The notes under the pieces were generated by a model, which was given only the letters and a program-made list of their open reading frames with translations, had not been told where the DNA came from and ran no database searches. A stretch of DNA of 64,000 nt from Setoptus koraiensis (lineage: Eukaryota > Animalia > Arthropoda). Position 1 is the first letter of the stretch. Every line of letters starts with the position of its first letter. The position numbers were made by a program, and so were the translations under genes. This document shows, one piece after another, positions 41,828-63,600 of this stretch. The stretch is taken from NCBI GenBank assembly GCA_048013815.1, contig CM106585.1:20274001-20338000 (forward strand), given 5' to 3'.

Positions 41828-42478
41828 ATGGAGGCCACCCAAGATGAACAAGTTGGAGTGACGGAACTTGAATCTGTTGTGGTGTCATCGAATGACTATG
41901 AGAAGAAGATAATGTACTCCGAAAAGCGGGTTCTAATGGCCCAGTCTAGAATCATAGAGCAACTCAATAGAGCAAACACAACATTGGGAATGCTAGTAAG
42001 GGAAAAAAATAACCTTGCAAGTCAAAGATCGGAATGGATGAAAAGAAAATCTGTTGAGGAGGAAAGAATTAGATTAGAGGAGGAAGACTTGAAACGTGTT
42101 CATCGAACAGACCTAGAAGAACTAAAACTACAATACAGAAACGAGACAATGGAAAAGCTTAAAGACATATCGATAGAGATCGAATCTAAAACTAGAGAAT
42201 ATGATGAGTTGCGCAAAATAATGGCCAAAGGCTTCGGTGAAAGAAGAACCAAGGAGAGCGAAATAAGATCGGAGTATCAAGTGAGAATCAACGAGCTACT
42301 TCGACAACAAGGCGCCATGGCGAGATGTGGAGTAAGCAGAGCTCATAAGAGAAACTTTCCGGAAGTTGATGGACGTGAAAATAATAGCTTGGATATGCTA
42401 AGAAGCATGAGTACATCTCATGTTGGAACGAGGATTAGAAACGTCAATATTTCTAGGCCTAAGAGAGGCAATTGTTGA
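41828..42478 (+). CDS. Orphan coiled-coil protein, 216 aa
   Basis: ATG-initiated ORF with an E/K/R-rich heptad pattern; no family recognised. Confidence 0.65.
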   Translation: MEATQDEQVGVTELESVVVSSNDYEKKIMYSEKRVLMAQSRIIEQLNRANTTLGMLVREKNNLASQRSEWMKRKSVEEERIRLEEEDLKRVHRTDLEELKLQYRNETMEKLKDISIEIESKTREYDELRKIMAKGFGERRTKESEIRSEYQVRINELLRQQGAMARCGVSRAHKRNFPEVDGRENNSLDMLRSMSTSHVGTRIRNVNISRPKRGNC

Positions 42479-42616
42479 GTTCACGTTCGATAAAAAGGTT
42501 TACTTAGTTGGCTAAAATTGGTTTATTGATTAAAATGATGGTATGTGTCAAATAGTAGTAGCAGTAATTTCATTTGAATGATATTCTTTAAATTTAAATG
42601 GCTGTTAAAAAAATTT

Positions 42617-43525
42617 TTAGTCCATTCTGATATGGCTAGCCAACTTGATGAGGTTGGTCGAGTTCGAAGAGCAAGCCACGTAAGATGATGTACATTGTTC
42701 ACACTTTCCTAATGATTGTCTTCCTTTGTTAGCAGCATCCTGGTAAAATCGGCTCTCTGTTTTGTTGAATACGTCGGCGTTTTGTAGTCTCACCATGTTC
42801 ATGAATACTTGTTTGCCGTCAGCTCCAAATCCTTGTGGGTTACAGTTGAGGTCACACACGGCTCTCGCTACACAGTCCTCGAATTTCGCCTCTCTTACAA
42901 GGTTGAAGGCAGTCTTGATGACTTCTGGGTCAATTTTGTTGGCTCTACGGACACGAACGTGAGTATCAGCGGGAGCTCCCAAAACTCCATCCAGACCAGA
43001 TGTGACGTTAACTTCTTTGTGGTGGTGTCCTACTAGTGGTGAGTCGACAGTTCCTTCTAATGAGATGGATGTATCGCCAACAGATTTAGCCAATGACGAT
43101 GCGGCTGAACTTGCTTCTGTGAGGGACTTGTTAGCCACGTTACCGGCCGCAACGACTTTCTCCGCAACAGGTCTGAGTGCCGAGGCTGCCACGCCAAGTC
43201 CCGCGCCCTTGACACCGGTACCTGCCAGCTCGAGTTTGGCACCGTCTTTGGCCATTATGAGTCCCACTACTTTTACGCCAGATCCGGCTGCTTTCATACC
43301 TGTGCCTACGGCGGCAGCATGTAATCCTCCTGCGACGGCTATTGGTTTGAGGGCGAGATCGGCAGCTGTTTTACCAGCAGCGAAAATTTTGACACCAGCC
43401 ATTTCTTCGGCATCGGCCAGTTTGGCGCACAATGTCCTCAGCATTGGTGCGGGGATGATAAGAGCTTGACATGATGACGCTAGGCAAAGAGTCACGGATA
43501 ATAAAATGACAATCTTGAAAGACAT
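42617..43525 (-). CDS. Secreted protein copy A, 302 aa: signal peptide, Ala/Gly/Lys-rich region, RVRR site, six-Cys DM4/DM12-like domain
   Basis: MSFKIVILLSVTLCLASSCQA signal-like; DCVARAVCDLNCNPQGFG..YQDAANKGR..CEQC..Y..C resembles the DM4/DM12 pattern (CxxRAxCE..YxxA..G..C..Y..C). Confidence 0.88.
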   Translation of the reverse strand: MSFKIVILLSVTLCLASSCQALIIPAPMLRTLCAKLADAEEMAGVKIFAAGKTAADLALKPIAVAGGLHAAAVGTGMKAAGSGVKVVGLIMAKDGAKLELAGTGVKGAGLGVAASALRPVAEKVVAAGNVANKSLTEASSAASSLAKSVGDTSISLEGTVDSPLVGHHHKEVNVTSGLDGVLGAPADTHVRVRRANKIDPEVIKTAFNLVREAKFEDCVARAVCDLNCNPQGFGADGKQVFMNMVRLQNADVFNKTESRFYQDAANKGRQSLGKCEQCTSSYVACSSNSTNLIKLASHIRMD

Positions 43526-43783
43526 GATATTTAATGAGAATACGTTAGTTAACAGGTGGACTAGGTATCAGTGGTAGGCTTGGTGGTTCAACTAGAGATG
43601 TTTGACTAGGAAACTTGAGTTGACTAAAATGTGTTGATTAATGGTTAACTTGTTGAAGTGATTATAGAACTTGTGCTCGTGAAATGAACTGAATGTCGAT
43701 GATTTGTTGATTGGCTAAATGAGCTGAGGGGCGTAAGTGGTACGATGATACTGATCAATGGAAAAGGTTAAATAATGCCACTG

Positions 43784-43791
43784 TATTTATA
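43784..43791 (-). promoter_or_regulatory. TATA box of copy A
   Basis: TATAAATA inside the block AATTTTGTATAAATACAGTGGCATT shared by both arms; TCAGT initiator-like motif about 30 nt downstream. Confidence 0.7.
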
Positions 43792-43967
43792 CAAAATTCC
43801 TTCCTCTGAATGCACCAAAATGTAACTAACAAATGCACTAGTTTTAACCAACACCACACATGTTGAGCGCGCACGCTGCCTAGCTACAATTACTAGGTTA
43901 TGTTACTAGCTTACACTAGGTAACGTTGTAGTTGTAACATTCTGGAAGAACTAAGGAAGAAATTTTG

Positions 43968-43975
43968 TATAAATA
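43968..43975 (+). promoter_or_regulatory. TATA box of copy B
   Basis: Same conserved block; TCATTC initiator-like motif about 30 nt downstream. Confidence 0.7.
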
Positions 43976-44233
43976 CAGTGGCATTGTCCACATCCAATCA
44001 TCATTCAGCATCCTCTCACAAGTTAAGTCTATTAGCCAATTTAGCCAATTAACACATTTTCTAAATTTAAATCGTTTCACGAGCACAAGCTCTATAATCA
44101 CACTAACAAGTTAATTATTAAATAATACATTTTAGTAACCTTAAATTCCGTAGTCAAACATCTCCAGTTGAATCATCAAACTTACCACTGACACATAGTC
44201 CACCTGTTAATTAACCTATTCTCACTAAACATA

Positions 44234-45142
44234 ATGTCTTTCAAGATCATCATTTTATTATCCGTGACCATTTGCCTAGCGTCAGTATGTCAAGCTTTTA
44301 TCATCCCCGCACCAATGCTGAGGACATTGTGCGCCAAACTGGCCGATGCCGAAGAACTGGCCGGTGTCAAGGCTCTAGCTGCCGGTAAAATAGCTGCCGA
44401 TATCGCCCTCAAACCGATAGCTGTCATAGGAGGACTACACGCTGCTGCCGTAGGCACAGGTATGAAAGTAGCCGGAGCCGGCGTTAAAATAGTGGGACTC
44501 AAAATGGCTAAAGACGGCGCTAAACTAGAGTTGGCAGGTGCTGGTGTCAAGGGCGCGGGACTTGGCGTGGCAGCCTTGGCACTTCGACCTGTTGCGGAGA
44601 AAGTTGTTGTTGCCGGTAACGTGGCCAACAAGTCCCTTACAGCCGCTAGCTCAGCCGCATCCGCATTGGCTAAATCTGTTGGCGACACATCCATCTCATT
44701 CGAAGGAACTATCGACTCACCATTAGTAGGACACCACCACAAAGAAGTCAACGTCACAGCTGGTCTGGATGGAGTTTTGGGAGCTCCCGCTGATACTCAC
44801 GTTCGTGTCCGTAGAGCCAACAAAATTGACCCAGAAGTCATCAAGACTGCCTTTAACCTTGTAAGAGAGGCGAAATTCGAGGACTGTGTAGCGAGAGCCG
44901 TGTGTGACCTCAACTGTAACCCACAAGGATTTGGAGCTGACGGCAAACAAGTATTCATGAACATGGTGAGACTACAAAACGCCGACGTATTCAACAAAAC
45001 AGAGAGCCGATTTTACCAGGATGCTGCTAACAAAGGAAGACAATCATTAGGAAAGTGTGAACAATGTACATCATCTTACGTGGCTTGCTCTTCGAACTCG
45101 ACCAACCTCATCAAGTTGGCTAGCCATATCAGAATGGACTAA
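44234..45142 (+). CDS. Secreted protein copy B, 302 aa (paralog of copy A)
   Basis: 22 aa differences from copy A, all within residues 1-176; the remaining C-terminal part is identical. Confidence 0.88.
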   Translation: MSFKIIILLSVTICLASVCQAFIIPAPMLRTLCAKLADAEELAGVKALAAGKIAADIALKPIAVIGGLHAAAVGTGMKVAGAGVKIVGLKMAKDGAKLELAGAGVKGAGLGVAALALRPVAEKVVVAGNVANKSLTAASSAASALAKSVGDTSISFEGTIDSPLVGHHHKEVNVTAGLDGVLGAPADTHVRVRRANKIDPEVIKTAFNLVREAKFEDCVARAVCDLNCNPQGFGADGKQVFMNMVRLQNADVFNKTESRFYQDAANKGRQSLGKCEQCTSSYVACSSNSTNLIKLASHIRMD

Positions 45143-45275
45143 ATTTTATAATAGCCATCTGAACTTTAAGAATATCATTTAAATGAAATCAACTCCTATT
45201 GTTTGACACAAACTATTATTTTAATCAATAAACCAATTTTAGCCAACTAATTAAACCTTTTTATTGAGCGTGAAC

Positions 45276-45474
45276 TCAATAATCGCCTCTCTTGGGACTC
45301 GAAATATTCACTTTTCATATCCTTGTTCCAACATTAGATGCACTCATGCTTCTTAGCATATCCCAGCTATATTTTCACGTCCTTCAACTTCCGGAAAGTT
45401 TCTCTTATGAACTCTGTGTACTCCACAACCCTTGGCGCATTGCCGTCTAGGTAACTCGTTGACTCTTACTTGAT
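45276..45474 (-). pseudogene. Decayed copy of the 3' end of the 41828-42478 coiled-coil gene
   Basis: Reads HQVRVNEL..HKRNFPEVEGREN, then a 1-nt deletion (AAAATATAGC vs AAAATAATAGC) leads to a stop; no 5' part. Confidence 0.85.
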
Positions 45475-45740: not shown

Positions 45741-46883
<1,143 letters not shown>

Positions 46884-47208
46884 TTAATTGGTGTTGTGTG
46901 TGTCGGTTGGTGAATTGAATTAGTTTGACTACTAGGCGTGTTGGTGTTGATTTTGATGTTGATTTTCGATTGTTTGTTGTTTGTGTGGCGTGCGGTGTAG
47001 ATTCGTTTGGGAGATACAATAATAATAATGATAATTGAGGTGATAGTTAAATATAAATATTTTAAACGTTAATACAATAATAATATGATAATAGTAATGT
47101 GATATAGAAATAAATAAAGTGAATGATTGTCAAATGACGTTACCTTGTCGCTTGATCGGGGCTGAGTAAATGAAGTTCGGCTCAACATCGACGTTGGATT
47201 TGCTCAAT

Positions 47209-47234
47209 TGTGTGTGTGTGTGTGTGTGTGTGTG
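47209..47234. repeat. (TG)13 microsatellite; similar TG/CA tracts at ~12514-12533 and 17422-17446
   Basis: Direct read. Confidence 0.95.
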
Positions 47235-47744
47235 TTGCGAATTCGGTTGCTAGTCGCTGGCGGCTAGTGTGTGCTCATAATCGCTGCATCGGTTACCCTG
47301 CTCTCTATCCACTGCTTCTTGGCTCATCCACTGCTCCACTGCTCACACTCTCGCAGCGCTGACACAGGCAAGGGCTGTGCCTGTGCTGCCGCGGCCGCCG
47401 CCGCCGAGTTCGTTGGATTTCGGTGCGTGTGTACAAAACGACGTTGTCCGTCTGTGTGAGCGGCCGGCCTCGGCCGTGTGTGCGTGCGTGCAAATGGGAC
47501 TTTTACTATCTATGGATCTGGCAGCCACTTTAAGTGTGTGTGTAACTTGGATGGGGTGTTGCGAGCCAAAACGGCCGCTAGAAAGCACCCGGTTCAGAGC
47601 GCAGCGCACGGCGCTTTTGGACATTATCGAAAAAATAGCCCCTGCCACAGCGGCGCAGCCTTGCCAGCAGAAACGGCGCGTTTAGCTGGAAACACCCGGC
47701 GTGGAACATGATGGAACTTTCTACCATCATTTCTGCCCATCTGC

Positions 47745-47814
47745 ACAGTACACGCTGTACAGTACACGCTGTACAGTGCACACTGTACAGTGCACTCTGT
47801 ACAGTGCACTCTGT
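47745..47814. repeat. Five tandem 14-bp self-complementary units, ACAGT(A/G)CAC(G/A/T)CTGT
   Basis: Direct read of five consecutive units. Confidence 0.92.
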
Positions 47815-49784
47815 ACTGCCATGCGCACAAGGCGCACTGCGAGCGCAGGCCCGGCCGCCTCAGCGGCTTTGCAGTGCAAAGTTTGCACTGCACATTCGCA
47901 CTGCCAATGCACGGAGGGGAGTGCACGCTCGTCGACGGGCAAGGCCACTCCCAGTCGCTGGGGCGCACCGGGGGCACGCTCAAAGGCACACTGCTAGCGG
48001 CCTATCGTCCCTCTGACCCTAGATGGGTATCCCCGAATATGCGCGCCATTCGGGGCTTTTGCAACCGTCGCAGACATTTTGGGTTTGTGCAACTTGCACA
48101 GTGGAAGCCGTGCGCCGAGTGTGAGTCATGTTTGAAAATCCGAATGTGTGTTTTTGATAATGTGAAAATTGTGTGCAACAGCACACACACACACACACAT
48201 GTGCACACTATTCTTTTTGGCGATGCCGCGCCACAGGCACGCCGGGCCGATGCGATGCCATCGTATATAATGGTATAATGATATGATGGTATTATGGTGG
48301 TGCCGTGTGCAGTTTCGGCTGCGTCCACCAGTGCCGCGCTGGGCCCGTCGAGCAACAATTGTTGTTTGGCCGACAACATTGTGTTGGCGAGAAATCAAAA
48401 CGTCGTAAAACAAAAAGCGTCCCTTTCCATTAGCGGAACACTCGGCGTTAGGTGTGCGCGGGTGCGCGCGCCACGCAACAGAACGGGCGCCCCTGGCGGT
48501 GATGCGCCGCATCGAGGCTGCAACATTGACGTTGCACTGATGAAGCATGCAAAAGTCAACCAACGACTCGACTCGCTGCCAGAACAACAAACCAACTGTC
48601 TAACTAATCATAAGCGCCGAATTCACGGAATATTTATTTATATATAATTGTTTGTGTATAAATAATGGAAGTGTGTTCTCGAGCTCGCTGCGAACGCGAT
48701 GATGTTTCGAACGCGACGCTGCGAACGCGACGCTTCGAACGCGCAAGCGAGCGGCTGAGTGAGAACACACATAGATCTGGTTATTATGATATGTTTGCCA
48801 TGGGCAGCCGAGCCGGCTAATGACGACAAGCTGTTGTCGACGGCGATTAAAACAACAAGCCGGCCTGCCCGTCGCCGGCATCTACCTCCCTCGGCGGACT
48901 GGCAGTGCCATTTAAACTTGAATTTGAGCTCGCAATGGCTTCGAACGCAATGGCTGCTGCAACCACCGGCTGCATGCACCATCGGCGGATCGCCGACTGC
49001 CAGCCGAATGAAAAGTTGACGGCGCTCGGCAAAAACATGGAGATCTGCTGTTGAACTTGAATCGACACACAGACAACAACAACAAGTGTTGTGTTCGCTC
49101 AAACTGGGCAGCCAACGACAGTTAACAGCAACAACGAGCCTCCAGTGTGGCTATTATGTAATGTGCGTTCTCTGTGTGTGCCAACAGCAACAGTCGTTGT
49201 TGGCTCCACGAAGGGTTGAAAGAAGCCGGCCGACCTGCGATCATGTTTCAACGGAGCGTCCACATCATCGCTCGATCGGATTCTTTTCTCTCTCTCTCTC
49301 TCTCTCTCTCTTCTCCGGTGAATTCAACTTTCAGGCTGTTGATACGAGTGTCGATATTTCTCTTTCGGTGCGCGACTTTGCAGTTTATAAACTACTGGAC
49401 GCTGCAGCATAGCGAGACGCTAAATGACCATTGGCTTACAGTGTGCAGCGATGATCCGAGCGTTGCCATCGTTGTTCGGCGACGATGCCGGCTCTGACCG
49501 CATTCAACATTGTAGTGATTGCAAGTGAATTGTTGAAGTGGATTATATCGGCAGATAGAGAGAGAGTGAGGGCTCCTTGTGTTTTTTGCAGGCTATTTCA
49601 GTGGCCTGATGAAGGGTTGCCCGCAATGAGACGGCCCGCTTAGTTGGTTAGTTTTGGTGCCGCCGACAACAGCAACGCATCACGACAACAACTGCTGGTG
49701 CTGCCACCAACTCATAAAAACTCATTAAGCCCATAGAATCGCGCCAGTAAATAGCTGGCGATGCTGCCGCCACTGCTGCTGTCC

Positions 49785-49860
49785 GGCTGGCGATTACATA
49801 ACTACGGCTGGCGACTACATAACTACGGCTGGCAACTACATAACTATGGCTGGCGACTAT
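49785..49860. repeat. 21-bp minisatellite GGCTGGCGACTACATAACTAC, about 3.6 copies
   Basis: Direct read. Confidence 0.9.
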
Positions 49861-52800
49861 GGGAATGGGGAAGAAAAAATTTCAAGACAAACACACAGTG
49901 ACGCGACGTCGGCAGCGGAGCTGGCTGATGAAGCCTCGGATTGGATCGGTTCGGATTTAATTCGGGATTCAATTTGATCGAAACAAGTGTCTGCAGCACT
50001 TGCAGTCTAGCTGCACTGAATGCAAACTGGCGGGCGGATTTGATCGGCGGAGCGGGCTGGTTGGAACGGGCGAACGAGCAACAACGCGAGAGTGGCAACA
50101 AAGGGATGGCAATAGTTATGATTGATGTTGAATTTGCAACGTCCATCGACAGCCAATCCGGCAGCCCGAACGGCCGCGCCGGCGCGGCCAAACTGGACAG
50201 CGGCACCGGGCTGGACAGCACAGCAGACACTGGACACAGCTATATAGCAGTAACAAGAGCAACAAGCCGGCACTGCTCTATAAATACTTGAGCGAATCGG
50301 CAAATTCCATTCACGTTTGCCCCTCGCCAACCTGATCGGCAGCCTGGGCACCTGGCCGCCAGGGCGCCGCTACAAACTGTTCGCGGTCGTCGTGGCGGTG
50401 GCGTTAGCGCACACACAGTAGTAATCTGCTGCAAGTGCTGCCAGTGGAATGGCCACTCGTACAATGGCCTCCTTCGGCTTCGGCATGTTTGCTCGTCAGG
50501 TGTGTGCGCCGGCCAGAGAGCGAGAGAGAGAGAGCCATTACGTAACTATGTGTGTGTCGAGTTGCGTCGTCATCGCGTCTCTCGCTGCCTGTCTCTGGCT
50601 TGCAGTGTTGCCTTACTCCCACTCCAACAACAACAGCAACAACATCGGCAGCGACAACAACCGCAACAGCAACATCAATATCAGCAGCAACAACGGCAAC
50701 AGCATCAGCAGCGACAGCAGCAGTGGCAGCCAGCTAAAAAATTCATACTCCATCATGGAGCCGCCGACGCCGCTCGTTTCATCGGCGGCAAGACGCAGCG
50801 CAGGGCCATACGTCACCTGTACAGTGTGTACAGCGTGGCCGGACACGAACAAAACTGTTAGAGTTAGATGGTTGAGCGGTTGAGTCAGATTATTATCTAA
50901 CAATCGGTGGCCGTTGTGCGCTGCAAGCGGCGCCTAATGATCGTTATCGGGCTCGCCTCGAGTAGCTTGCCAGGCGAGCGCATAGCTGCCGACCGGCGGA
51001 CCGACCGACTGAAACACTGGCCCGCCGTCCACTTGCCGGTCAAGTGGTCAAGCTGCCAGTTGCGGCCATACAGTTACATGATAGCTGGCCGGGCCAGGCC
51101 GGGCCATCAAGGCTGCGCCGATGAGAGCCGCTTCTAATCTGATCGGGCTCGCTCGGACCGTTCCTTCCGTTTTGCGCCAAGTGGCCACTTGGCGGTTGCG
51201 AACGGCCCGCTCATTTGCCACAATTCTTCACGCTTATTCGCCCGTTCGCTTCGCGCGTCGGCCGGCCAACGGTCATCTTTTCGTTTTTTTTTTCTCTCTC
51301 TCTCTCTGTCTCTTCGCATTGCTCGCATTATGTTGCTCATCGCTGTCCATCGGCGTCACTTATGCAATGATAGCGGCACGATAGCGGTATATGTATGCAT
51401 ATGCGGATAGCCCTATCAGGGCGATAGGCTATCACACGACGGCATCACCGGCGTCACTGCGCAGCGTAATTACTCGGCAACTGTTAACGGTTTGATCGGT
51501 TGGCGGCTCGTATCATTGCTGCTGCGAGTGTGGTCGCCAGCTCGAATTAATTTCATTTTTGAACTTTGATTTATTTGACTACGAGCCGCGAATCGCGGAC
51601 CTGAGCAGCGCAAATCAATCATCGATTCGGAAGGCAAGCGAGCCGGTTAGCTGGCCAGCGAAACAATTGGGCTCGCGCATTGGCCAACAAATTCGCATTA
51701 TAATTCGCATTCTAATTTGATTAATTCCGCATGATTAATCTGATTGAGATTAATCTCGTCTCGGCGCCACACACACACACACGCACGCATACAAATGAGT
51801 CATTGTGCGACTAGTCGAGACGAACGTTCTCACCTGTGCGCGCTGTCACGACGACATAATTCATCAGATATAATTAAGCTGGGTGTGTGTGTCATTAGCA
51901 ATGGCAGTGCCATACTGGCAGCAGATTACAAGCCAGCGATTGTGCCGTCTATTTTTGCACTAGCGATGCACTCTGATCATTAGCACATAAGTAACTTATG
52001 ATAAGTTAATTGTTAATTGTTTATTGTTTTGTCTTGGCGTCATTGTCGTTGCACCGGCCTGCTCCAGGTGAGCGGGCGCCCGGTGTGTGTGTGTCAGTCG
52101 GACAATTGAGACACTGGCAACGCTTGACGGGCTGCTCACATGTATTGTGTGAGCCACAAACAAACTGTATGCAAATTAACGGTGTCATGCCACTGGCGCC
52201 GGTGACACCGACACCGACACCGAGTCAGACGGCCAACGGCCAATCAAGCCGCTGCAACAATTGATTGCGTCGATAATTACATAATGGCTTTACATGGGTG
52301 AGAGCCGGGCCGTTTATTGTGCCCAGCATCAATGGTTGTTTGAACAACATTTGATCCAATTGAGTGCGCCACAATGACAAAGTCGCCTGGGAATGTGATC
52401 TTATTTCGCCTTGCACCATACACATTATCTTTACTCTCGCTCGCCCTCTACGGCGAGTCTCTCTATGGCTGGCTGGTCGCCGGCGGTTGGATTGTTTCTA
52501 GATTCATGGGTTGATGTGCCAGTGACTCTCGGCTCGGCGCTCAGCTATCATTTTTGATGCAGCCACTCACGGCGACAGTTTGCCCCTTTGAGACTCTCTC
52601 TCTCTCTCTCTCTCTCTCCCTCTCGGTTTGGCCAGCTCGGTTTGGCCAGCTCGGTTTGGACCATGTGCGAAAAGTCAGCAAGTTTAAATGACGCAATCGT
52701 TCGCCACTCAAACTACAACAACCTGTGCGCAAGCAAGCGAGTTCGAAACATCACACAAAGTCACTTAGCTAACACAATATAGCCAAATGGCAATATATCA

Positions 52801-53695
52801 AGCGATATATCAAGCGATATATAAAGCGACATAGCAAAGTAACGCAAAGCCATGCAGCAATGTGAGCGTCACAATGGTGGCCAGCTCGCTTTGTTTGCGT
52901 TCGCAGTGACTTATCTCGACGGCGACACTTGCGCGCCGAGATGATACAACTAATGCTGCATCATGACTAGCTCGCTTGCATACTCTTAGTGCTCTGTCAG
53001 TGCTCTTAGTCGGATTGTCAGCGTACAGATCCGCTATTGATAGCGCCATTGTTGAGCGTCGCCGATATATCGCTGCAATCGCGCAATCCTGTATCTGTAT
53101 CAGATTGGAATTGTGTCATGAGCCGGTGTCATCGCATGTCTTTATTTTATTTCGTTTTCGTTCATTCAAACGCACGGCGCAAGAGATTATCTGTTTGAGT
53201 CGCATCACCAGCCTGACATATCTCTCTGGTGTGTTGTCGCCCGAGCAGTCACATCGTCGCAGCAGTCACATCGTCGCAACTGTCATACGCTCGCAACTGT
53301 CATATCCTCATAAACTGTTATTGCGACTCGGTGCCAGCCGTTGATGGCCCATCAACGGCCGGCAATTTGTTGCAGTTTGTTTGCACTGATACCGTCGTCG
53401 TGCTTGCCGACAACACGCCGACGGATATGAGCGCATATCTGGATTGTGCCCATTTGCTCATGCTCGCCCATTACCATTACAATACATAATTACAATTGCC
53501 GGCACATATTGGGGCAACTCGCACATTTGTTTGGAGCGACCGTTAATAAAGTTTGCAGCGCCTCCATCCGGCCAAGCACCCAGCGGCCGGCCGAGGGGGG
53601 CCATTAAAAAGTGAGACACCCAAGTTGCGGGTCGCCCGGCCGGCCAGAGACAGTTCATTGACCATGGCGCTCGGCGGAGCCCGTAGTGACCCGTG

Positions 53696-53724
53696 GCCCG
53701 GCCTCTGGCTGCCAGAGGCCGGGC
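53696..53724. repeat. Perfect 14-1-14 palindrome
   Basis: GCCCGGCCTCTGGC T GCCAGAGGCCGGGC. Confidence 0.95.
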
Positions 53725-54244
53725 GGGGCCTGTGGTGCGGCATGTGATGCGGCCCGCGTTGCGGCCCCACAACGTCGGCAGTGTCAGCGTTCAGCTCGCT
53801 GTGTGCGTTGCGTCAAAACAATGGACAAAAAGTTTTATTTATTATTGTTATTATTGCCTTTATTATCTAGCAGATTATGCAGCCGTGCCATTAGTATGCC
53901 ATTACAGCGATGGTATGAACGGCAGATAGGCGCATAGGCCACACTGGCGAGCGCACGTTGGATTGCATTACAACAAACAACAATTATTGTTAGTATTAGT
54001 GTTGTTATTTGTGTCTTGGCGCAACTGCGACTAGCTCACTAGCTCGCTGGCTCACTAGCGGCTGGCTGGCTGGTGAGTCACTAGTTTGTTACGACGCAAT
54101 CATCACAAAGCCACTAATGACTGGCGAGCCGTCGCCATAAATAAGGCCCATTCAGCATGCGGTGCGCCAACACGGACAGATCTTGTTGCCGGCGTGCCCA
54201 TGGCCATCGCTGGCGCACCATTGGCCGCCGGGCCAGCATTTCCA

Positions 54245-54364
54245 ATATTTTTCAACATCTCCGATATTTGCAATATCTCCGATATTTGCAATATTTCCGA
54301 TATTTTCAATATTTCCGATATTCGCAACACTTGCGATATTCGCAACACTTGTGATATTTGTGAT
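54245..54364. repeat. Degenerate 18-bp minisatellite GATATTTGCAATATCTCC, about 6-7 copies
   Basis: Direct read; produces the spurious CNISDI repeat ORFs. Confidence 0.88.
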
Positions 54365-56486
54365 AACACATTTGCAACATTTCAGCGGCCGTCAGTCGCT
54401 GAACAGTTTGCACCAACAGTGCGCCGCACTGCGCGCGACACGCAGCGATATTGCGCAACGATCAAAAGTGAATCGCATCAAGTGTGTCGCTGTTGGTCAG
54501 TTTGTGAGCCACTTCCGGTGCCCGCTTTGCGCAATAAACGCGCGGCTGCGCAGCAGTTACGCAACACAATTATTGTTAAATGGCTGCCGTTTGGTGCAAT
54601 AATTGCGTCGAGCGGCAGCCATTGTGCAGCCTGTTAATTAGTCAGCGGCTGCGGCAGCAGGTTCGATGCCGGGTCGTTAATACGCCAGATAGCCAACGAA
54701 CAATGCAAACATAAATCAGCGCCGCACACTGTGTCATGATATCTAATCGAGCTACTTTGTTGTTGTCGTTGTTGTTGCTGTTGCGGCTGTCGTTGTTGTT
54801 GCTGCTGTTGCGGCTGTTGTTGTTGCTGCTGTTGCGGCTGTTGTTGTTGTTGCTGGCGGTGATTATTGTTTTTATGCAACGCACAATGATGATCGCAGCC
54901 ACCTACGTAAATACGTAAAAATATATTTGTTTGTATGTTGCAACCACACTCACACTCTGAAGAGTGCGTATGCCCGACGTATGGTTGCCCAATATCAGGG
55001 CGCATATCGCACATATACGCTAGTTGATGTGTATTTGCGACGCTAATGCAGCAAGTGCAGACGCGCCGAGCCAGAGATTTCTCATATCTCACATTGCATC
55101 TCATGTTTGCCTGTCACTGCAATGTCGTCGTTAGCGATGATAGTTAGTGTGACATGGACACACAGCGACAGAGACAGAGAGACGCAACTCGCCACCAAGC
55201 AAAACAACAGATGGATTGTCGGATTATATTATTATTATTATATTATTGCACGGCTCGCAATTGCGCCGCTCGGATTACCCCAGCCGCCAGCCAGCCAGCC
55301 AGCCACTGCCATCCATCCACTGCCATCCACTGCCAGCCGCCAGCCAGTCTGGCAGCCAGATAGGCGACGGATAGGCAGCGGATAGGCGGCGGATCGGCAG
55401 CCGGAGATTACTCGACGAGCTAGCAGCGAAAGCGGCCAAAACTGGAGCCCGTCGACGCTCCATCAATTGCGCCGACCTTGGCCGGCAAGCACGCGAGCGC
55501 CGCTATGTAACATAATAGCGCCTGGCGTGATCGCTCACAGCGCCGCCGACGCCAGCCTGTTATGCAACGCTCAAACTGCGCTCACCAATCAACAGGTGCC
55601 CGCAAAAAACCACCAAATGCACAACAGGTGAGCCTGGCGCTTGTCATTGGGCTGTCATTTGGGTGGTTAGGTCATTATTACGCCACTGACTCCATCGCAG
55701 CTCCATGGCAGAGTCTGCTGCCGCTGCCAGAGAGTCTGCGGTTCTCGGCCGGCCTACGTTACACACACACACACGCACGCCGTCACTGTCCTGATGCACA
55801 CATATCCCGATGCATCATTGCGCTGTCGTCAGTCGATTGACAATTGTTGTGCTAATTCCATTTAAACAAGCTTGTTATTGTTGTTGTTGGTGCATTGCTG
55901 TTGCCGCTGTCACCGTTGTTTGTGGCTCCGTGCACCGTTGCACCACAAACAGACATTCGCAAGTTGTGAATCACAACAGTGAGTGCTGTCAACAGTCAAT
56001 TGACAATTGTCAGTGGCGCGAATGGTGCACTGCACCCTGCACCACACACACTCTTTATTGCAAGTTGCAATTTGCAACACACACACACACACGCACACTC
56101 TCTAATAGAGAGTCTCTATCGCAACGCACACACACACACACACACTCTTTATTATGGCACACACACACCCGCACGCCCAATTATACGCAATTATGCAATG
56201 TATCGTTATGGTGACATTGAGTTATTGCGAGAGTGATCATCAAACGATAATGTTTTTTATGTTACATGTTACATAATAATGTGTTGTGACCGGCAGTGTC
56301 TATTACTAATAGACTATTAGTGTCTATTTTTGTATTTTTGTTGCTGCCACAAATTGGTGCACTCGTTGCGCAACGAGCGTGTATCTAGCCTAGATGATGT
56401 AGCAATGATTGGTCGCCTACAATTTGTATAGCTAGTAACAGGGATTTACATAACACCATCAGCTGATTGCAGCCAGCCGAACACAG

Positions 56487-56515
56487 GTGAGCACTTTCAC
56501 CGTGAAAGTGCTCAC
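56487..56515. repeat. Perfect 14-1-14 palindrome
   Basis: GTGAGCACTTTCAC C GTGAAAGTGCTCAC. Confidence 0.95.
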
Positions 56516-57026
56516 TTAACGCCACCTGTGCTCACCTGGCCTCAGGTCTCGATAAGATCGAGCCTTCGAACACAACGGGATCATCTCTTGCATCATCTCT
56601 TGCATCATCTCTTGCATCATCTCTCTGCAAAGTGTCCATGGAGCCCGTGTTTGTTGGTGTTGTTTGGCAACCACTTGAGGGATGACTTGACTTGTTGCGT
56701 GCCCGTGTGGGTTTTTTGAGCGTTTGTTGTCAGTGTTGTCGCAAGTGAGTCAGTGAGTCTCGCCGTAACCTGTAACTCACAAGTGCCGTAAGTGAGCGTC
56801 TCGAGAAACTGACGTTCAATCATGGCCATGAGTCAGCCATGTTAGTGATTCACAGGTGACTCAACACTGTTCAGCGTGAACGCCAATTGCGGCTGCGTCA
56901 GTGGCAAGCTGCTTTCTCGACAAACGTTCTGCAAACATAACTAATAGCCAGCAACCTGTTATCAGCAGCAAATGAATACGCAGCTCATTAGCGCCAGCAC
57001 GCAGCGATGGAGCGAGCGAGCAAGCA

Positions 57027-57029
<3 letters not shown>

Positions 57030-57057
<28 letters not shown>
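57030..57057. repeat. (GA)14 microsatellite; related CT tracts near 49288 and 52595
   Basis: Direct read. Confidence 0.93.
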
Positions 57058-57060
<3 letters not shown>

Positions 57061-58293
57061 AACGGAAACAATTGGCAATATCGGTCTTACATGTATTACG
57101 TAATACTGTATAACTGGCATCGTGTGTGTGATTTACGCGCACTATTACAGCACCATTGTAGTACGCATTGTGGCGTGAGTAGTGTGTTAGTTGCATGACT
57201 AGTTGAATGACTGTGAAACACTGCGCGATTCGCCATGAATCGAGGTTACGATCTAGAGTTAAGCCCTAGAGTCGAGCCCGGCGAACAGCGAATTTGAGAA
57301 CTATTTGTGCAATTCGACGAGCGCATTCGATCATGATGATGGCATAAGACGTGACGCAATGATAATTGCTGCCGCTACTCATTGCAATAGTTTGCAAGCT
57401 ATTGCAGATTGTCGAATAGTCAGTGCTATTGGAAATTGTCAGTAGCAGTCCGTGAGTGGCAGTCCGTAAGTGGCAGACATGCTCCAAATGCAGCCAATGG
57501 GGCTCCCGTTCGCGACCCACTCACTAATAGTGAGTCACTATATAATAACTGGTGTATATAATAATAAAAATCTTTTACAGATGCTAACATCTATATAAGA
57601 TGTGTCTACGGTTCAACACGACGAGCAATTGATCGGGGGCCGATTGCTGGAGCTAGCGAGCGAGCGACAGGGGGGCACTAATAAACGACCATTCATACGA
57701 GGGCGAGGCGGGCCGGCATGAGACGAGCTCGGTGTCAAAGTGTCTCGGCAAACAAAGTATCTCATCGTGCCAGTTGCTGCAATTAGCCCATGTGCATACC
57801 GTGCCTTCCGTTGCTCGCTATTCAGCCATTTATCCATTTATCCAGCCAGCCTGCCAGCCCGCCAGTCGTTGAGCCATTAAGCCATTCAGTTATACGCACA
57901 CACATATATAAATTCAGTTATTTTGCAGCCGTATAAAGTATATTTATATATGTTATAGCGAGCGTTAGAGCGAGCGTGATAGATCCATAAATGGCTGCTC
58001 ACTGTGATGAGAGAGTCAGTCGAATTTGTCGCGGCCAACAACAAATACACACAACAACAAATATCTGCTGCCAGCTCGCCAACTCATACGCCAGCACCAA
58101 CACTAAACTAACTGGCACCACAACAAATAAACAGATTACAATGTATAATGAATGATCTTGGCATGAGCGTAAGATTGTTAGCTGGTGTTGTCATTCAGAC
58201 ATTATCATTTTTAGCAAAAATGACTCTAACCTCTGTCTGACACTATCAAGCTATATCACAAATGGCTCGGCTAAGTGACGCCGAGCTGGCTGA

Positions 58294-58297
<4 letters not shown>

Positions 58298-58342
<45 letters not shown>
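58298..58342. repeat. (CTGG)n microsatellite, about 11 copies
   Basis: Direct read. Confidence 0.92.
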
Positions 58343-58343
<1 letters not shown>

Positions 58344-58626
58344 TATCAACCATTGGCTGGCGGTATTTGCAAGCGATACATGCATGCATGCGATTTGCGA
58401 TTTGTGGCACTTGGGCGACATGTGTGGCAACGAGATGCAGCGTTGCGATGCAAATTACAATATTAGATAACGGTTTTATCCTGTTTATTTTGTGTCATTT
58501 TGCGCACAAGTCTCAAGAGCGACCCACAGAGCGACAGAGCCAAACAGCCAGCGACAGAGCCAAACAGCGAGTGAGAGTGGCGGTTTTGAAGCGCATGCTG
58601 GGCGACACCTTTGACCCAATTTAGTA

Positions 58627-58690
58627 ATTCAGTGATTCAGTGACTCGGTGACTCAGTGACTCAGAAATTCAGTGATTCAGTGATTCAAAA
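58627..58690. promoter_or_regulatory. 8-bp tandem array TCAGTGA(C/T) containing adjacent AP-1 consensus sites
   Basis: TGACTCA at 58649 and 58657 among TGATTCA variants. Confidence 0.5.
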
Positions 58691-60623
58691 ATTCAGCAAT
58701 TTTGCAATTCCGCAATCGCTCGCTTGGTTCAGTTATTCAGTTCAGTCGGGCTGCTGCGGGCCAGCTCCTCGGCTCCTCGGCTGCACGGCTCCCCGGCTGC
58801 ACGGCTTCTCGGCTTGTCAGCTTCGCGTCGTATGTTCATTAGCTCGGCGCTCGGCAGGGCCTCAGGCTCGCCTCGTTACGTCGGCGGGGCCTTTCGCTCG
58901 CGAGTCGCGACTTGCGGGGCTCGCTTGCCGTGCACAGTCGCTACTCGCGAGCGAGACCCGTTGGCGCTTTGCTGCTGAATTTCGCCAGCCAGCTCGAGAG
59001 TTCGAGACACTGCAACATTCAACTGTTGTTAGAGAGAGCGAGAGAAATAATAAATAATTGCATGGCCGTGTGTGTTCGTAATGAGAAAGACACAGCATTT
59101 TTGTGGCAGTTTACATGGGATCCGTAACATGCTTGTGTGTTGCGTCTATTTGCATACTCTCGCTCTTCACTTTGCTCTCTAAACTCTCTCTCCGAGCTAC
59201 TCGCAGCAATCAAGAATCTTCTCTCTCTTTCTGCCAGAGAGTCTCTCTTTCTGCCAGAGTCTCTCTCTCTCTCTGCCAGAGAGTCTCTCGCCAGCCAGCA
59301 AGAGTCGTATTGATGCTGGCGCGAACGTCGCCGCTGTCTCTGCGAACCGTCAACATCAACTCACATACAAATAGAGGCAACGAAATAAGCTAAATAAGTA
59401 CCATCAAACAGTGAGCAAGTTAGCAGCGATAGATCGCCCACATCCATACTTGGGATTATAAGGCAAATGTAATTAAATTCATGCAACTATTGCGTAGAGG
59501 GCCAGCATTTCGTCGAGCTGCAAATCGCAATTATATTTGCATACACTTCAGCGCTCGTTGGGCTGCCTCTTTTTCCCGGCCTTCGCTCGGCCTTCTGTCG
59601 GCCTTTTCTCGGTCTTTTCTCGGCCTTTTCTCGGCCTTTTTCTCGAAGTCGACAATCGAGATCTGTTACCATTTGCATAACATGCCACAACAACAGCAAC
59701 AACCGCACAACTCCACGCCATTGCGAACAGTCTCAATAGTATGCGACTGCATTAGCGGCTAAGGCAACATTAGCGTCAAATTGACTAGACACAGAAGCCG
59801 TGAAGGTGAAAATGACAAACACCGAGATGCTCCAAATCGTCCTATTGTTTTTAGCTCTCGAGCTAGCTCAAGCTAATGGCCTCGTCTCGGGCCCGTCGCT
59901 GCGTGGCTCAGCTCGGCGGCTCGCTAGGCCATCGCGATAGGCGGTAAGCTAGCATATCGCTAGCTTGCTGCCGATGCCCATATCGCTAGATCCGGCTGGC
60001 ACCGGCTGGCGTCGTTTTCTGGAGCAGCGACTGGATAACTCAATTAGGAGATGTTGCTGCCATCTCTGCTTCGAGACGGCAGGCGATGGCACGAACGAAT
60101 GACGAGCCGAGAAACGGTCTGAGCCGTCGACAGAATTCCGTCATCGATTCTCTGGCCCTTCGTTGCGTTGACGGCGAACAAGTTCGAAGCTTCGCCGAAG
60201 CGTCCGACAATGCTCATCGCGCTCTGCATTGTCTGGCGCTGCGAACGCCAAATCAATCAGCGCCGCCGCCACTCAAAATTGACCTGTCAGCAGACTCTAT
60301 TACACAATAGATTATACACAGCTAGCTATGGCTGAGCTCGCCACACGTCCAGGGCGACACCTGTTGTGTTGTTATTTATTTGAGCACAGTGTGATGCAAT
60401 TCAAGCTAGGAACAATGTAAAATAGATGGTGATGATGATGTAAATGAAGGGGCCCAAATATGGGCCGGCAATGTGCCGAAAACGGGCTGCACAACAATAA
60501 TAATAATGGCAATAATTAATAATAATGGCAATAATTAATGGTAGCAATTGATAAATGCGAGTGCCAATTCATGGTGATGAGCGGTGCACGAAGTGTGATA
60601 ATATAAATAAAATATACGCAATA

Positions 60624-63600
60624 TCAGGTGGCGCTGCCCTGGCACTTTTCGTAGCGGACCCATTTGCTCTTGATGTCGCGGCTGAGCTCGTTGTGCTCGG
60701 ACCTCAACACGGCCAATTGGTCCTCCAATTTGTCGCCGTGAGACTGTATGTCGTTCTCAATGTGCCCATAATGATGCACCAGTTTCAGGTCGGACTCCAG
60801 CTCCAGTTTGAAATGATTTGTGTCGTGACGCAACTGCTTCCATCTGACGGTGTCACTTTCTATTTTGCTCTCCAACACCCACAACAATTGCTCCAAATAT
60901 GAACTGCTACTGTTTTGGCCGTCACTTGACCCACTTGTTGTTGTGTCCGGCAACAGTTTGTGCATTGTCGCCAACAACAACTCTGTTGTGGAATTCAAGT
61001 CGGCAAAGCTGTCATCGGCTGCATGGCTGCTAGTTGGCTGCAGTATTTTATCAAGTCTATCTAGAGATGAATTGGTGTCACCAGCTATGGCCTCAATGAG
61101 ATTGTAATTGTGCTGTGTGCGCCATCTTATGACGCTGTGATTAGTTGACAAAAGATCAACTTGGTTGCTGTTGTGATTGTTGAGCTTGATTTGTGTTGAA
61201 TTCAACAGTACACTCTCGATGTAATTGAAATTGTTCGAGCTGACACTGTTGTATTTGTTTATTTCATCCAGATGGGCCCTGTTGCTCTCCAACGATTGCT
61301 CCATAAACTCCTGATAATTTTGGATGGAATTCAAATAATAATCCGTGTCCCTGGTGAGCAGCGAATCAATTGACTTTTCAAACTGGTGCTCATATCTACT
61401 TTGGGTGCCATTCAGATGGCTCCACCGAGGCCACAAATCGCCACTCAGCTCTGCATCAATGGCTTGCCACACTGACACGAGTGGCTGCAATTGGTTGAGA
61501 GCTTGGTCGCTGGGCTTGTTGTCTGCCGTTGAAGCGATCATGGTGTCCAAATCGGTTTGTCGTTGCGACGCCAGCAACAGCTCGTAGGATTTTGTCAGAT
61601 TTTGTATACTTTTGACCATATTCTCCATACGCGAGCTCTGTTTCTCTACGGCGAGCGAGCTGTTTTGCAAACGATCCGTGTGGCTAGACGCCAATCCGTC
61701 CGGTCGCAATTCCGTCGAGCCCCCGATGAATCGATCGAGCCGAGGCTCGAGTTTCCTTTGTTTTATCCGCAATGTCACACTTGCCATAACGGAGTCGGTC
61801 AGTTGAGCCAATTCATTCACATACTCTGACTCTAGCGCGTTGGCCGCCTGGTACAGGCTTGCATTGTGTTGTTGTATCAGCACCAATGAGGCCTGCAACA
61901 AATCTGATAGCTGCTGCTGCTGAAACGATCTTAAATCTCGCGAACATGAGGCCCAATTCGTGACGAAGCAACGCGCCTCATCGCTATTTAGGTCTGCATC
62001 GGTGGTGGGCAGGGTGAGTCGCTCAATTGAGAACGACGACAACCTGTGGAATAGCTCGTTGTTTGAATTGTTGGTGGCAAACAGATATTGGGTGGCCGCT
62101 TCGTATTGGTGGCGAGTGTCCAACAGTTGCTTGTTTTGCTTGTCGTGCACAATTTTAATTTGGTCCTCAATGATGCCAGTGGCATTGAACAATTGCTGGG
62201 CCCGGATAAAATTCAATTTCCAATCGGTGCGCGGCTGGCCCGACCGGTGCAACAGAGTCGTCTCTATGCCAATCCTGTCCTCGTCCAATTGTTGCAAATC
62301 TCTGTCTAGCTGACGCTTGAGCAATTCAACTTGCTCGATCTGCTCCGACAATTCGCGCGACTCCAATTCGAGCTGGCGTCGTCGTTGGTGCCCCTCTTGG
62401 TGTGGCTCGATTGGCGGCCCCATTTGGCGGTCCCAATTTGCGGAGGTGCCCGCGAATTGGGCCCCATTGGCGAGAAACGGATAAAGAAAGTTGCGCACAT
62501 CGGACAACAAATCAAACATTGTCTCGTTGTAGGTGTGCGTCGCGCCCAAGAACCTGTCACTGTATATTTTCTCCTGATTGATGGTCCTCACGATGAAGTG
62601 CAGCTTTTTCTCTATGTATTCCTCTTGCTCTGGAGTGAGCGAGCCAACCGAAACCGGCGAGGCCCATCGCTTGGCCCTGTCACGCCACCTGTCCAAGCCG
62701 TTCAAACTGTCAAAATGTCCCCCGCGAGCGTCCAAACTGTCGGAATGTCCCCCAGAAGCGTCCACACTGTCGAAATGTCCCTCAAAAGCGTCCAAACCGC
62801 CGGAATGCGGATGAGCCGATTGTTGGCGCGATTGGCCCGCTCTGAAACTGGCCGACCGGCGATAGCTCACGCTCAACCGGTCAGCGTCGTGCCACAGAGC
62901 GGCCACTTTGGCCAGCCACTGGTCGTAGCATTCGCCGCAGCGCAAGCAGCTCTTCGGCGACGGGATATCCTTTAGCAAATTCATGTTGTACGTGTCCATT
63001 GTGAGGCTGTCGTTAGCGTCGGCGCCCTCGTGATGGGGCCCCGATGACCCGCTCGCCGCGCTTGTTGGGCTGGCGAGCGTGGCGGTGGCGTTGAAGTAGT
63101 AGCCCGTGGCGCACTTTTCGCACTTGCTGCCCGTCATTTCGGCCAAACAGTCGCACTGGCCGGTGCTCTTGTCGCAATCCGTGGACCGGGACCCGAACAT
63201 GTTGCAATTGCACATTTTGCACTTGCGCTCGGACTTGGGATCGCCCCAGAATCCGAAGCCGCACTGGTTGCACTTGCGGCCCCCGTAGCCCGGCTTGCAT
63301 TCGCACTGGCCCGTCAGCGGATTGCACGCCCTCAACTGGGTGCCCGCTTGAGAGTTGGCTCCTGCAAACTGGCCATGCCCAGCGCCGGCAGTGGTACCGT
63401 TGGACTGGGCGGTATTTGCGGCGGTTGTGAGCGTGCCCTCGGGGTCGCAATTGCACCGCTCACAACCCACGCCCGCGGTCATATTCCAATAGTTGAGCTG
63501 ACATTGGTCGCACTTGTCGCCCTGTACATTGTCGGCGCACTGACACTGTCCGGTGTGCCTGTCGCAGGGCAAATAACTGTAATTGTTGCTGCCGCTCGGG

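Follow-up and report, generated by a model that had tools for sequence, protein, structure and literature searches.

Head-to-head genes for a putative two-part secreted precursor in Setoptus koraiensis, in inverted arms with an identity step inside the coding sequence

Why would a genome keep two copies of one gene head to head in a near-palindrome, and why would these copies be almost identical in one part and clearly different in the other? The questions are raised by a locus of Setoptus koraiensis within a stretch of 64,000 nucleotides (contig CM106585.1 of assembly GCA_048013815.1, positions 20,274,001 to 20,338,000 of the forward strand), which is referred to below as the window and in whose numbering positions are given. 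An earlier note on the window had pointed to the pair and had described its product as an uncharacterised secreted pro-protein. As detailed below, the locus is best explained, with a probability of about 0.55, by an inverted duplication of a gene for a processed pro-protein, followed by gene conversion limited to one domain, the protein having, as the least certain part, an endogenous extracellular role.

Two transcription units in inverted arms

The left gene (42617-43525, minus strand) and the right gene (44234-45142, plus strand) are intronless and intact in the list of open reading frames (ORFs), each encodes 302 amino acids, and their 5′ ends face each other in a divergent arrangement. 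The two proteins align without gaps at 93% identity, which together with the ORF list confirms the head-to-head pair of intact genes in the earlier note. The palindrome of about 1.5 kb per arm that it had placed at 42276-45474 is likewise recovered: a gapped alignment outward from the centre follows the similarity from 43829/43928 to 42283/45467 and falls to the random level beyond, giving a left arm at 42283-43829 and a right arm at 43928-45467, each of about 1.55 kb. Sliding identity along this alignment agrees with an inverted-repeat search, which returned a 1139-nt inverted pair of 91% complementarity and three outer extensions. The arms are about 9% diverged overall, with indels, and are separated by a centre of about 100 nt (43830-43927) that cannot be aligned, its innermost block matching at 20 of 50 positions, the random level. 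A genome-wide search (48.76 Mb in two contigs, the window lying at C1:20.27 Mb) found only these two copies.

Each arm carries the signals expected around a gene. A 23-nt block with a TATA box (TATAAATA) is identical in both arms and lies at 43774-43796 (minus strand) as the putative left promoter and at 43963-43985 (plus strand) as the right one; two matches were found where none was expected. Its core, TTTTGTATAAAT, is also present upstream of the orthologue in the nearest relative (contig L013), and the upstream region in a second species (contig L001) contains TATAAATA plus TCAGTT. About 90 nt past the stop codons, a 22-nt block with AATAAA, a putative poly(A) signal, is again identical in the two arms (42510-42531, minus strand, for the left gene; its mirror at 45223-45244, plus strand, for the right gene). 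To judge from these elements, each arm is a full transcription unit of TATA block, coding sequence and AATAAA block. A scan for bacterial promoters and terminators is not meaningful at a eukaryotic locus.

The outer ends of the arms indicate the direction of copying. The outermost 200 nt or so of the left arm is the intact 3′ end of a neighbouring ORF (41828-42478), and its counterpart at the end of the right arm (45272-45467, minus strand), which aligns to 42283-42478 and corresponds to the last 65 or so codons of that ORF, is a dead fragment with a 1-nt and a 3-nt indel and stops in every frame. Because the 3′ end of the neighbour is intact on the left and decayed on the right, the left unit is parental and the right unit derived from it by inverted duplication. 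A segment of about 1.55 kb was copied in inverted orientation; it comprised a single gene without introns, the TATA promoter and poly(A) signal of this gene, and about 200 nt of the neighbour's 3′ end. The outcome was two divergently transcribed paralogues, each still under purifying selection.

Palindromes can arise as artefacts of long-read assembly, and a fold-back chimera, a misjoined haplotype or an identical tract produced by polishing could underlie such a structure. A fold-back is very unlikely here in view of the 9% divergence, the indels, the unique centre and the asymmetry of the arms, of which one alone ends in a pseudogene fragment. The substitution pattern, moreover, is that of two genes under selection, and the same arrangement occurs in an independent short-read metagenome assembly of another species. 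An assembly error of any of these kinds is thus hardly tenable, and the pair is a real, aged inverted duplication.

Third-position differences amount to 0.17 between the copies and to 0.57 between them and L013, which dates the pair, or its last homogenisation over whole arms, to a time after the divergence of the nearest relative sampled. In a relative-rate comparison with L013 as outgroup, 28 polarised nucleotide changes fall on the left copy and 13 on the right (p=0.03), which marks the left gene as the faster-evolving copy. As read from their substitutions, both copies are functional and under purifying selection. The suggestion that the protein is kept at double dose is an oversimplification: 12% of residues differ between the N-terminal halves of the proteins, and change is faster in the left copy.

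Layout of the predicted precursor and its family

By word index, 43 unnamed relatives were recovered from Logan, ENA or JGI assemblies; they are 281-353 amino acids long, apart from one fragment of 203. They are 50-79% identical to the window protein, or 50-63% if the nearest relative, at 79%, is set aside. The family alignment contains 45 sequences, 36 of them with complete N-termini, and the fractions below refer to these numbers. The contigs of the relatives are gene-dense and intron-poor, with single-ORF genes for a 518-amino-acid IMPDH, a 525-amino-acid ASC channel and a 468-amino-acid aminotransferase, which suggests that they come from related mites. The family comprises about 45 unnamed sequences, beyond which a whole-library profile search turned up almost nothing, and a full-text literature search on its peptide motifs and on the sample accessions found no paper. 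The literature searched contains no account of the N-terminal module, of a pro-protein with this two-domain layout or of repeated conversion confined to one domain. A feature search of the ESM Atlas with the whole protein gave scores of at most 0.83, to arthropod secreted proteins and, at 0.79, one DM4_12 cluster.

A predicted signal peptide occupies residues 1-22 (43460-43525, minus strand; mirror 44234-44299, plus strand), polar at its start and hydrophobic over a 12-residue core, with small residues at -3 and -1 and a predicted cut after C-Q-A. By a heuristic criterion (10-residue window with mean Kyte-Doolittle hydropathy of at least 2.0), such an N-terminus is present in 36/36 complete members; its sequence varies, typically ending in S-Q-A or C-Q-A before a conserved mature start. 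It is followed by an N domain of 146 residues (27-172; 43010-43447, minus strand; mirror 44312-44749, plus strand), a linker, a basic site and a C domain with six cysteines. This layout of signal peptide, periodic N module, basic site and six-Cys domain is found family-wide, so that the secreted bipartite precursor proposed earlier, signal peptide included, is borne out at the level of predicted sequence features.

The linker is hypervariable (22-67 residues, Gln-rich in most species) and is modelled as coil. The HHH linker of the earlier note proves to belong to a conserved GHHHK motif, kept in 38/45 and overlapping the sequon N173-V-T. This sequon is itself widely conserved (30/45), but the other three N-glycosylation sequons of the window protein occur in 3/45. 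The basic site R191-V-R-R194, with a predicted cut before A195 (42944-42955, minus strand; mirror 44804-44815, plus strand), matches the furin consensus RVRR in the window copies; across the family, however, what is conserved is a dibasic K/R-R followed by Ala rather than RxxR (P1 Arg in 43/45, P2 Lys or Arg in 44/45, P1′ Ala in 44/45, P4 Arg in 16/45). Since this dibasic site stays constant inside a hypervariable linker, the precursor is most likely cleaved there, between K/R-R and Ala, by a convertase of furin/Kex2 type to yield two fragments. After removal of the signal peptide, such a cut would release an N fragment of about 17 kDa, with an eight-heptad amphipathic core, an unpaired invariant cysteine and the GHHHK motif, and a helical DM4/DM12 domain of about 12 kDa with three disulfides. 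Signal, pro-region, dibasic site and disulfide-rich C-terminal product, with R-V-R-R in the window copies, are shared with the convertase-processed precursors of other arthropods; the differences are the rarity of Arg at P4, a predicted cleavage and a "pro-region" as conserved as the C domain. Owing to this last feature, the N fragment is probably a product in its own right.

The C domain (residues 195-302; 42620-42943, minus strand; mirror 44816-45139, plus strand) has six cysteines which, like the single cysteine of the N domain, are each conserved in 44-45/45, as expected from the six-Cys domain first proposed. Its likeness to DM4/DM12 (PF07841, IPR006631), a domain of secreted arthropod proteins, lies in the motifs CxARxxC(E/D)L and Y-Q-x-A...G...C-x6-C. 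Pfam DM4_12 is matched by 22/22 tested members, all below the cut-off and at best with E 2e-4; the window protein scores 16.5 bits in full and 20.3 bits for the C domain alone, against a gathering cut-off of 22 bits. The same genome contains two canonical DM4_12 ORFs above the cut-off. With one of these (L011:1348-1761, 28.3 bits to PF07841), the C-domain profile aligns in hhalign over 97 columns with a probability of 95.1% and E 3.2e-8; with the other (L012) it gave no significant match. In this alignment the CxARxxC(E/D)L motif and the C-x6-C pair fall into register, and C218, C224, C278 and C285, all conserved in 44/45, coincide with the four cysteines of the L011 ORF. Four conserved cysteines near the C-terminus are described for DM4_12 (PMC12825958). 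C228 and C275 are additional to these four and probably form a third disulfide. The DM4/DM12-like pattern reported earlier is upheld by the profile comparison, though not by the Pfam score, and on this evidence the C domain is a DM4/DM12 homologue that has diverged and carries an additional pair of cysteines.

It also differs from DM4/DM12 proteins in what precedes it, namely a putative convertase site and the 146-residue N domain, which in the whole-library search was otherwise found in only two Cys-free proteins. Osiris 17 and 24 of the brown planthopper are secretory-pathway proteins that likewise end in a DM4_12 module (PMC12825958); unlike these, the window protein has no DUF1676, transmembrane segment or AQXLAY motif, and its N-terminal partner is unrelated. 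AlphaFold2 models the C domain as all-helical, with predicted local distance difference test scores (pLDDT) of 65-75. A PDB sequence search with the C-domain profile found no match, Foldseek against the PDB with the full-length model found nothing at E<=0.001, a wide VIA-align search matched nothing but generic long helices, in the low-confidence N part (Z<=5.1), and an ESM Atlas fold search reached TM scores of at most 0.29, to unrelated families. The canonical DM4_12 gene at L012:1480-2462 (C1:16.37 Mb) is apparently divided between two ORFs, of which the first encodes a signal peptide followed by a Gln-rich stretch and the other the Cys domain; a layout of signal, Gln-rich linker and DM4_12 may be general in the source mite.

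The N domain is rich in Ala, Gly, Val and Lys, is 146 residues long with no indel in any of the 45 members, and has one unpaired invariant cysteine (C33). Between P61 and P119, seven glycines stand exactly 7 residues apart (G67-74-81-88-95-102-109); in N-domain numbering, Gly is at 41/48/55/62/69/76/83, hydrophobic residues are at 44/51/58/65/72/79/86 and Lys at 52/59/80. Read as a heptad register, position a is Gly, position d is Ala, Met, Ile, Met, Leu, Val and Val in turn, and position e is often Lys, so that residues 60-119 form a ladder of eight heptads with a coiled-coil-like core pattern of small and large residues. Six of the seven glycines are invariant over 52 aligned sequences, in which distant proteins of the P0045 type are included. 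The ladder segment carries a net charge of +5 and its flanks 0 and -3. The periodic, amphipathic Ala/Gly-rich module of the earlier note is thereby confirmed, but it is no low-complexity, silk-like filler: the length is fixed, and the ratio of nonsynonymous to synonymous divergence (dN/dS) is 0.22-0.25 in the window pair and 0.06 in the second species. By these sequence measures, the N domain is a novel, strongly constrained module.

Its relatives are few. The N domain gave no Pfam match at E<=10, nothing in an ESM Atlas feature search and, with its profile against the PDB sequences, a best E of 0.37; no window of it reaches transmembrane-level hydrophobicity (Kyte-Doolittle maximum 1.4-1.5). 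When the N-domain profile was run with HMMER against all 1.84 billion cluster representatives, four proteins were found, two belonging to the family itself and two distant ones, P0045 (E 7e-9) and P0046 (E 1e-4). Proteins P0045-P0051, from metatranscriptome and Logan sequences, share with the window protein a signal peptide, the K-P-I-A motif, glycines spaced by seven and a closing (E/K)-P, in a module 42-46% identical over about 70 residues (E 7e-9 by profile, 1.5e-5 by tblastn). They are Gly/Ala/Lys-rich and differ in lacking DM4_12, cysteines, KR site and GHHHK, and in P0045 the module is duplicated in tandem. P0051 (Logan contig, 343 amino acids) has about ten tandem nonapeptides of the type K-G-T-x-A-L-K-K-G ahead of the ladder module, and L027:634-828 (JGI Ga0247655) is a weak relative of this module only (47% over residues 45-109, E 6e-6).

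AlphaFold2 places helices in the N domain at a pLDDT of 30-45, whether it is modelled in the full protein or alone (45 with a widened alignment of 52 rows). As the C domain folds moderately well at the same alignment depth, the N module may need partners or a surface to fold. A complex prediction with two copies of the N domain scored 0.00 with controls absent, and so speaks neither for nor against binding. Small residues in core positions are characteristic of Alacoil antiparallel coiled coils and of the coiled-coil silks of aculeates. The ladder resembles these in its heptads with small and hydrophobic core residues and its Ala-rich composition, and differs in that Gly rather than Ala is invariant, that only eight heptads bounded by prolines are present, that sequence homology is lacking and that structure prediction does not confirm the fold.

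Some features touch on expression. Many relatives lie on contigs of 1.0-1.9 kb, and one identical contig of 1135 nt with flanks of about 100 nt recurs in five samples; it looks like an mRNA, which hints at good expression. The effective number of codons (ENC) is 46-49 in the two genes of the pair, 54-56 in most neighbours and 39 in the neighbouring actin gene, a weak hint of raised expression that is confounded by amino-acid composition.

An identity step between the two copies

The two genes differ at 58 nucleotides, 57 of which lie in nt 1-526 of the coding sequence and one, at nt 621, in nt 527-909. At the upstream rate, one difference or none in 383 nt has a binomial P of 4e-18. Synonymous divergence (dS) is 0.27 over codons 1-175, with the dN/dS of 0.22-0.25 given above, and 0.012 over codons 176-302, where dN/dS is not meaningful (2 differences). 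The near-identical tract (42617-42999, minus strand, in the left copy; 44760-45142, plus strand, in the right copy) ends at the stop codon, beyond which the identity of the arms returns to about 80-90% (about 85% over the next 350 columns). Because the synonymous sites in the C part are identical too, the tract is due to gene conversion and not to constraint. Between species, the mean identity over 990 pairs is 70.1% for the N domain and 71.9% for the C domain; as the two thus evolve equally fast, the variable N module and invariant C domain of the earlier note are a property of the window pair and not of the protein. Conversion has homogenised only the coding part past the N domain, from the remainder of the linker through the cleavage site to the C domain, and the N domains have diverged.

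Base composition was compared with L013, whose contig shows no partner copy and extends only about 730 nt upstream. The GC content of third codon positions (GC3) in the converted C part is 0.46-0.47 in the window versus 0.32 at L013:1277-1660, and the N parts are alike (0.45-0.47 in the window, 0.43 in L013). The contrast is, as a single comparison, consistent with GC-biased gene conversion. Primate Y-chromosome palindromes have gene-bearing arms between which gene conversion takes place, and the window resembles them in its inverted arms, short spacer, one gene copy per arm and conversion between arms. It differs from them in having arms of 1.55 kb that are 91% identical, with conversion over only about 383 nt of coding sequence; identity above 99% is confined to nt 527-909 of the coding sequence and does not extend along the whole arms.

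A second species offers a comparison for the position of the step. On the ENA metagenome contig L001, a complete gene, whose product shares 51% identity with the window protein, stands head to head with a second copy that lies 452 nt away and ends at the contig edge. The L001 copies show 105 differences in nt 1-453, with dS of about 1.4-1.6 and dN/dS of 0.06, and none in the 126 nt that are left before the contig breaks off (P=4e-15). Two JGI metagenome contigs from the same organism extend this picture: L025 is 99.9% identical to the full L001 copy, and L026 begins within a C domain and leads into a flank of its own. In the final 287 nt of coding sequence, these two show five differences, all synonymous; their stop codons differ, and past the stop they are 26% identical, which is the random level. 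On the most economical reading, L026 is the 3′ end of the truncated L001 copy. If so, a far older pair would show the same step, with a boundary within about 25 codons of that in the window and likewise ending at the stop codon; its C part would have been homogenised recently, and its N parts would be saturated at silent sites.

In contigs of seven other species, with 0.7-10 kb of upstream sequence, the gene is a single copy and no partner is present. The two paired species fall into different clades of the N-domain tree, so that the window and L001 pairs are probably of independent origin; one ancient pair followed by losses in the other lineages could also account for this distribution. Two further observations concern the relatives. 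In JGI sample Ga0314735, two contigs of about 1.1 kb (L023 and L024) encode proteins with about 90% identity whose differences are even along the gene, without a step, and may represent two species or an unconverted pair. On contig L002, the upstream neighbour of 317 amino acids and the downstream ORF of 200 amino acids are unrelated to the family and to the window neighbour, and no synteny was seen.

The two concordant cases (n=2) raise the hypothesis that selection acts on where conversion is tolerated, such that one C domain is combined with two N modules. A single chance conversion of about 400 nt that happened to fall on the C-coding part, its position being unselected, would also create a step. 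Conversion tracts of about 380 nt are of the usual size in animals, so that the tract in the window is ordinary in this respect; it contains one mismatch (nt 621), and seven other species manage with a single copy. The tract halts at the stop codon, however, although the arms run about 330 nt further at 80-90% identity, and the older L001 pair (dS about 1.5) has its step within some 25 codons of that in the window, also ends at the stop and must have had its C part converted long after duplication. A chance position of the tract is accordingly regarded as unlikely.

Possible function, genomic setting and implications

An endogenous extracellular role is favoured here on account of the associations of DM4/12 proteins in insects and of the heptad ladder. 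The DM4/12 family, annotated as "function unknown", numbers 30 genes in Drosophila (PMC8664486); time courses of honeybee larvae list DM4/12 genes beside cuticle, chitin-binding and Osiris genes (PMC9764631), and the domain's presence in the planthopper Osiris proteins (PMC12825958) is a hint in the same weak sense. By this analogy, the protein may tentatively be placed in the secretion programme of the apical matrix or cuticle, as a component that self-associates or is surface-active.

The alternative, also raised in the earlier note, that the protein is a salivary effector for host manipulation, produced by the salivary glands and passed into plant cells, with the pair retained for its dosage or for two N variants that face the host, deserves attention because eriophyoids are thought to manipulate their hosts through saliva, with effectors unknown (PMC7738191). 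The predicted protein is secreted and lineage-restricted, its promoters are of the TATA type that is typical of strongly tissue-specific genes, and divergence of the N domains goes together with homogenised C domains. Against this stands strong purifying selection (dN/dS 0.06-0.25), an N-domain length fixed in 45/45, one or two copies per genome without family expansion, and conservation across many lineages that presumably live on different hosts. Host-targeted effectors are usually fast-evolving and species-specific (PMC7738191), and of positive selection, species specificity and expansion none is seen in a family with these dN/dS values and 43 relatives at 50-79% identity. In host-specialised mites, low dN/dS, fixed length and low copy number argue against an effector in an arms race, which makes such a role quite unlikely. 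A further alternative is a membrane-active or antimicrobial pro-protein whose cationic Gly/Ala/Lys ladder, once freed, would insert into or permeabilise membranes in the manner of a glycine zipper or of bombinin/PGLa. The +5 charge of the ladder between flanks of 0 and -3, the amphipathic heptads with small residues and the absence of a soluble monomer fold in the AlphaFold2 models would suit this role, and many arthropod antimicrobial-peptide precursors carry convertase sites in a similar layout. A highly conserved domain of 146 residues is, however, unlike the short, fast-evolving antimicrobial peptides, its hydropathy stays under the transmembrane level, nothing ties DM4/12 to immunity, and the Pfam, ESM Atlas and PDB searches lend no homology support; we therefore consider this role very doubtful.

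Several points weigh against the combination preferred here, namely inverted duplication, a processed pro-protein, domain-limited conversion and an endogenous extracellular role. L026 is assigned to the second L001 copy by parsimony and not by a continuous contig, and the agreement is between two species. The single copy in seven other species implies that two N variants are not needed everywhere. Arg at P4, the signature of furin, is present in a minority of members (16/45). Structure prediction gave no confident fold for the N domain (pLDDT 30-45), and its proposed helicity and self-association follow from the heptad pattern alone. The link to cuticle runs through other DM4/12 proteins, in insects, and through a family annotated as "function unknown" (PMC8664486).

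A bolder and still more speculative version, which we regard as doubtful, is that the ladder, with its K-P-I-A, seven glycines 7 apart and closing Pro, is an undescribed module for extracellular assembly or surface activity in acariform mites, and that head-to-head pairs have been repeatedly selected in this family, conversion keeping one shared DM4/DM12 domain as the two N modules diverge. If this were true, the mature material might be, for example, a heteromer of two N variants joined through the invariant free cysteine, and the orphan DM4/12 family would gain a first mechanistic foothold.

The surroundings of the pair are gene-dense, with long single-exon ORFs for a ZSWIM8-like protein of 1494 amino acids, a BBS7-like protein of 964, a PP2C of 689 and an intronless actin. 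In the eriophyoid Aculops lycopersici, 83.7% of genes are intronless and a tiny genome is carried on a few minute chromosomes (PMC7738191); a compact, intron-poor source genome, as the window suggests, fits this pattern. A chironomid midge was considered as the source and rejected in favour of a mite, a globin search of the genome having given only 3 hits. The neighbouring ORF at 41828-42478 (plus strand) encodes a coiled-coil-like protein of 216 amino acids, is convergent on the left copy and matches no Pfam family (best match E 0.077). Its stop codon is only about 30-55 nt from the AATAAA block of the left copy, and the 3′ untranslated regions of the two genes probably overlap. About 270 nt past the end of the right arm lies the intronless actin gene, of cytoplasmic type (376 amino acids; 45741-46871, minus strand), whose codon bias is the most marked of the window (ENC 39). 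The GC content is 0.36-0.43 in most of the first 46 kb (extremes 0.30 to 0.46) and 0.46-0.58 in the last 18 kb (46000-64000), and a laminin-EGF ORF at 60624-63935 has a GC3 of 0.67 versus 0.30-0.47 in the other measured genes.

DM4/12 is among the larger arthropod families of "function unknown", and here its domain stands at the C-terminal end of a conserved pro-protein, from which it would be released. As paralogues are very few in this tiny genome, it may offer a simpler system for asking what the domain does. The N domain is a compact, strongly constrained new module, with regular glycine heptads and without annotation, a solved relative or a predictable fold. The pair itself provides a clean natural case of domain-limited concerted evolution, and the same boundary in two lineages whose duplications are about five-fold apart in synonymous divergence would make selection on tract position testable. 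For work on eriophyoid pests, a tempting effector candidate would be removed, or would at least be of lower priority.

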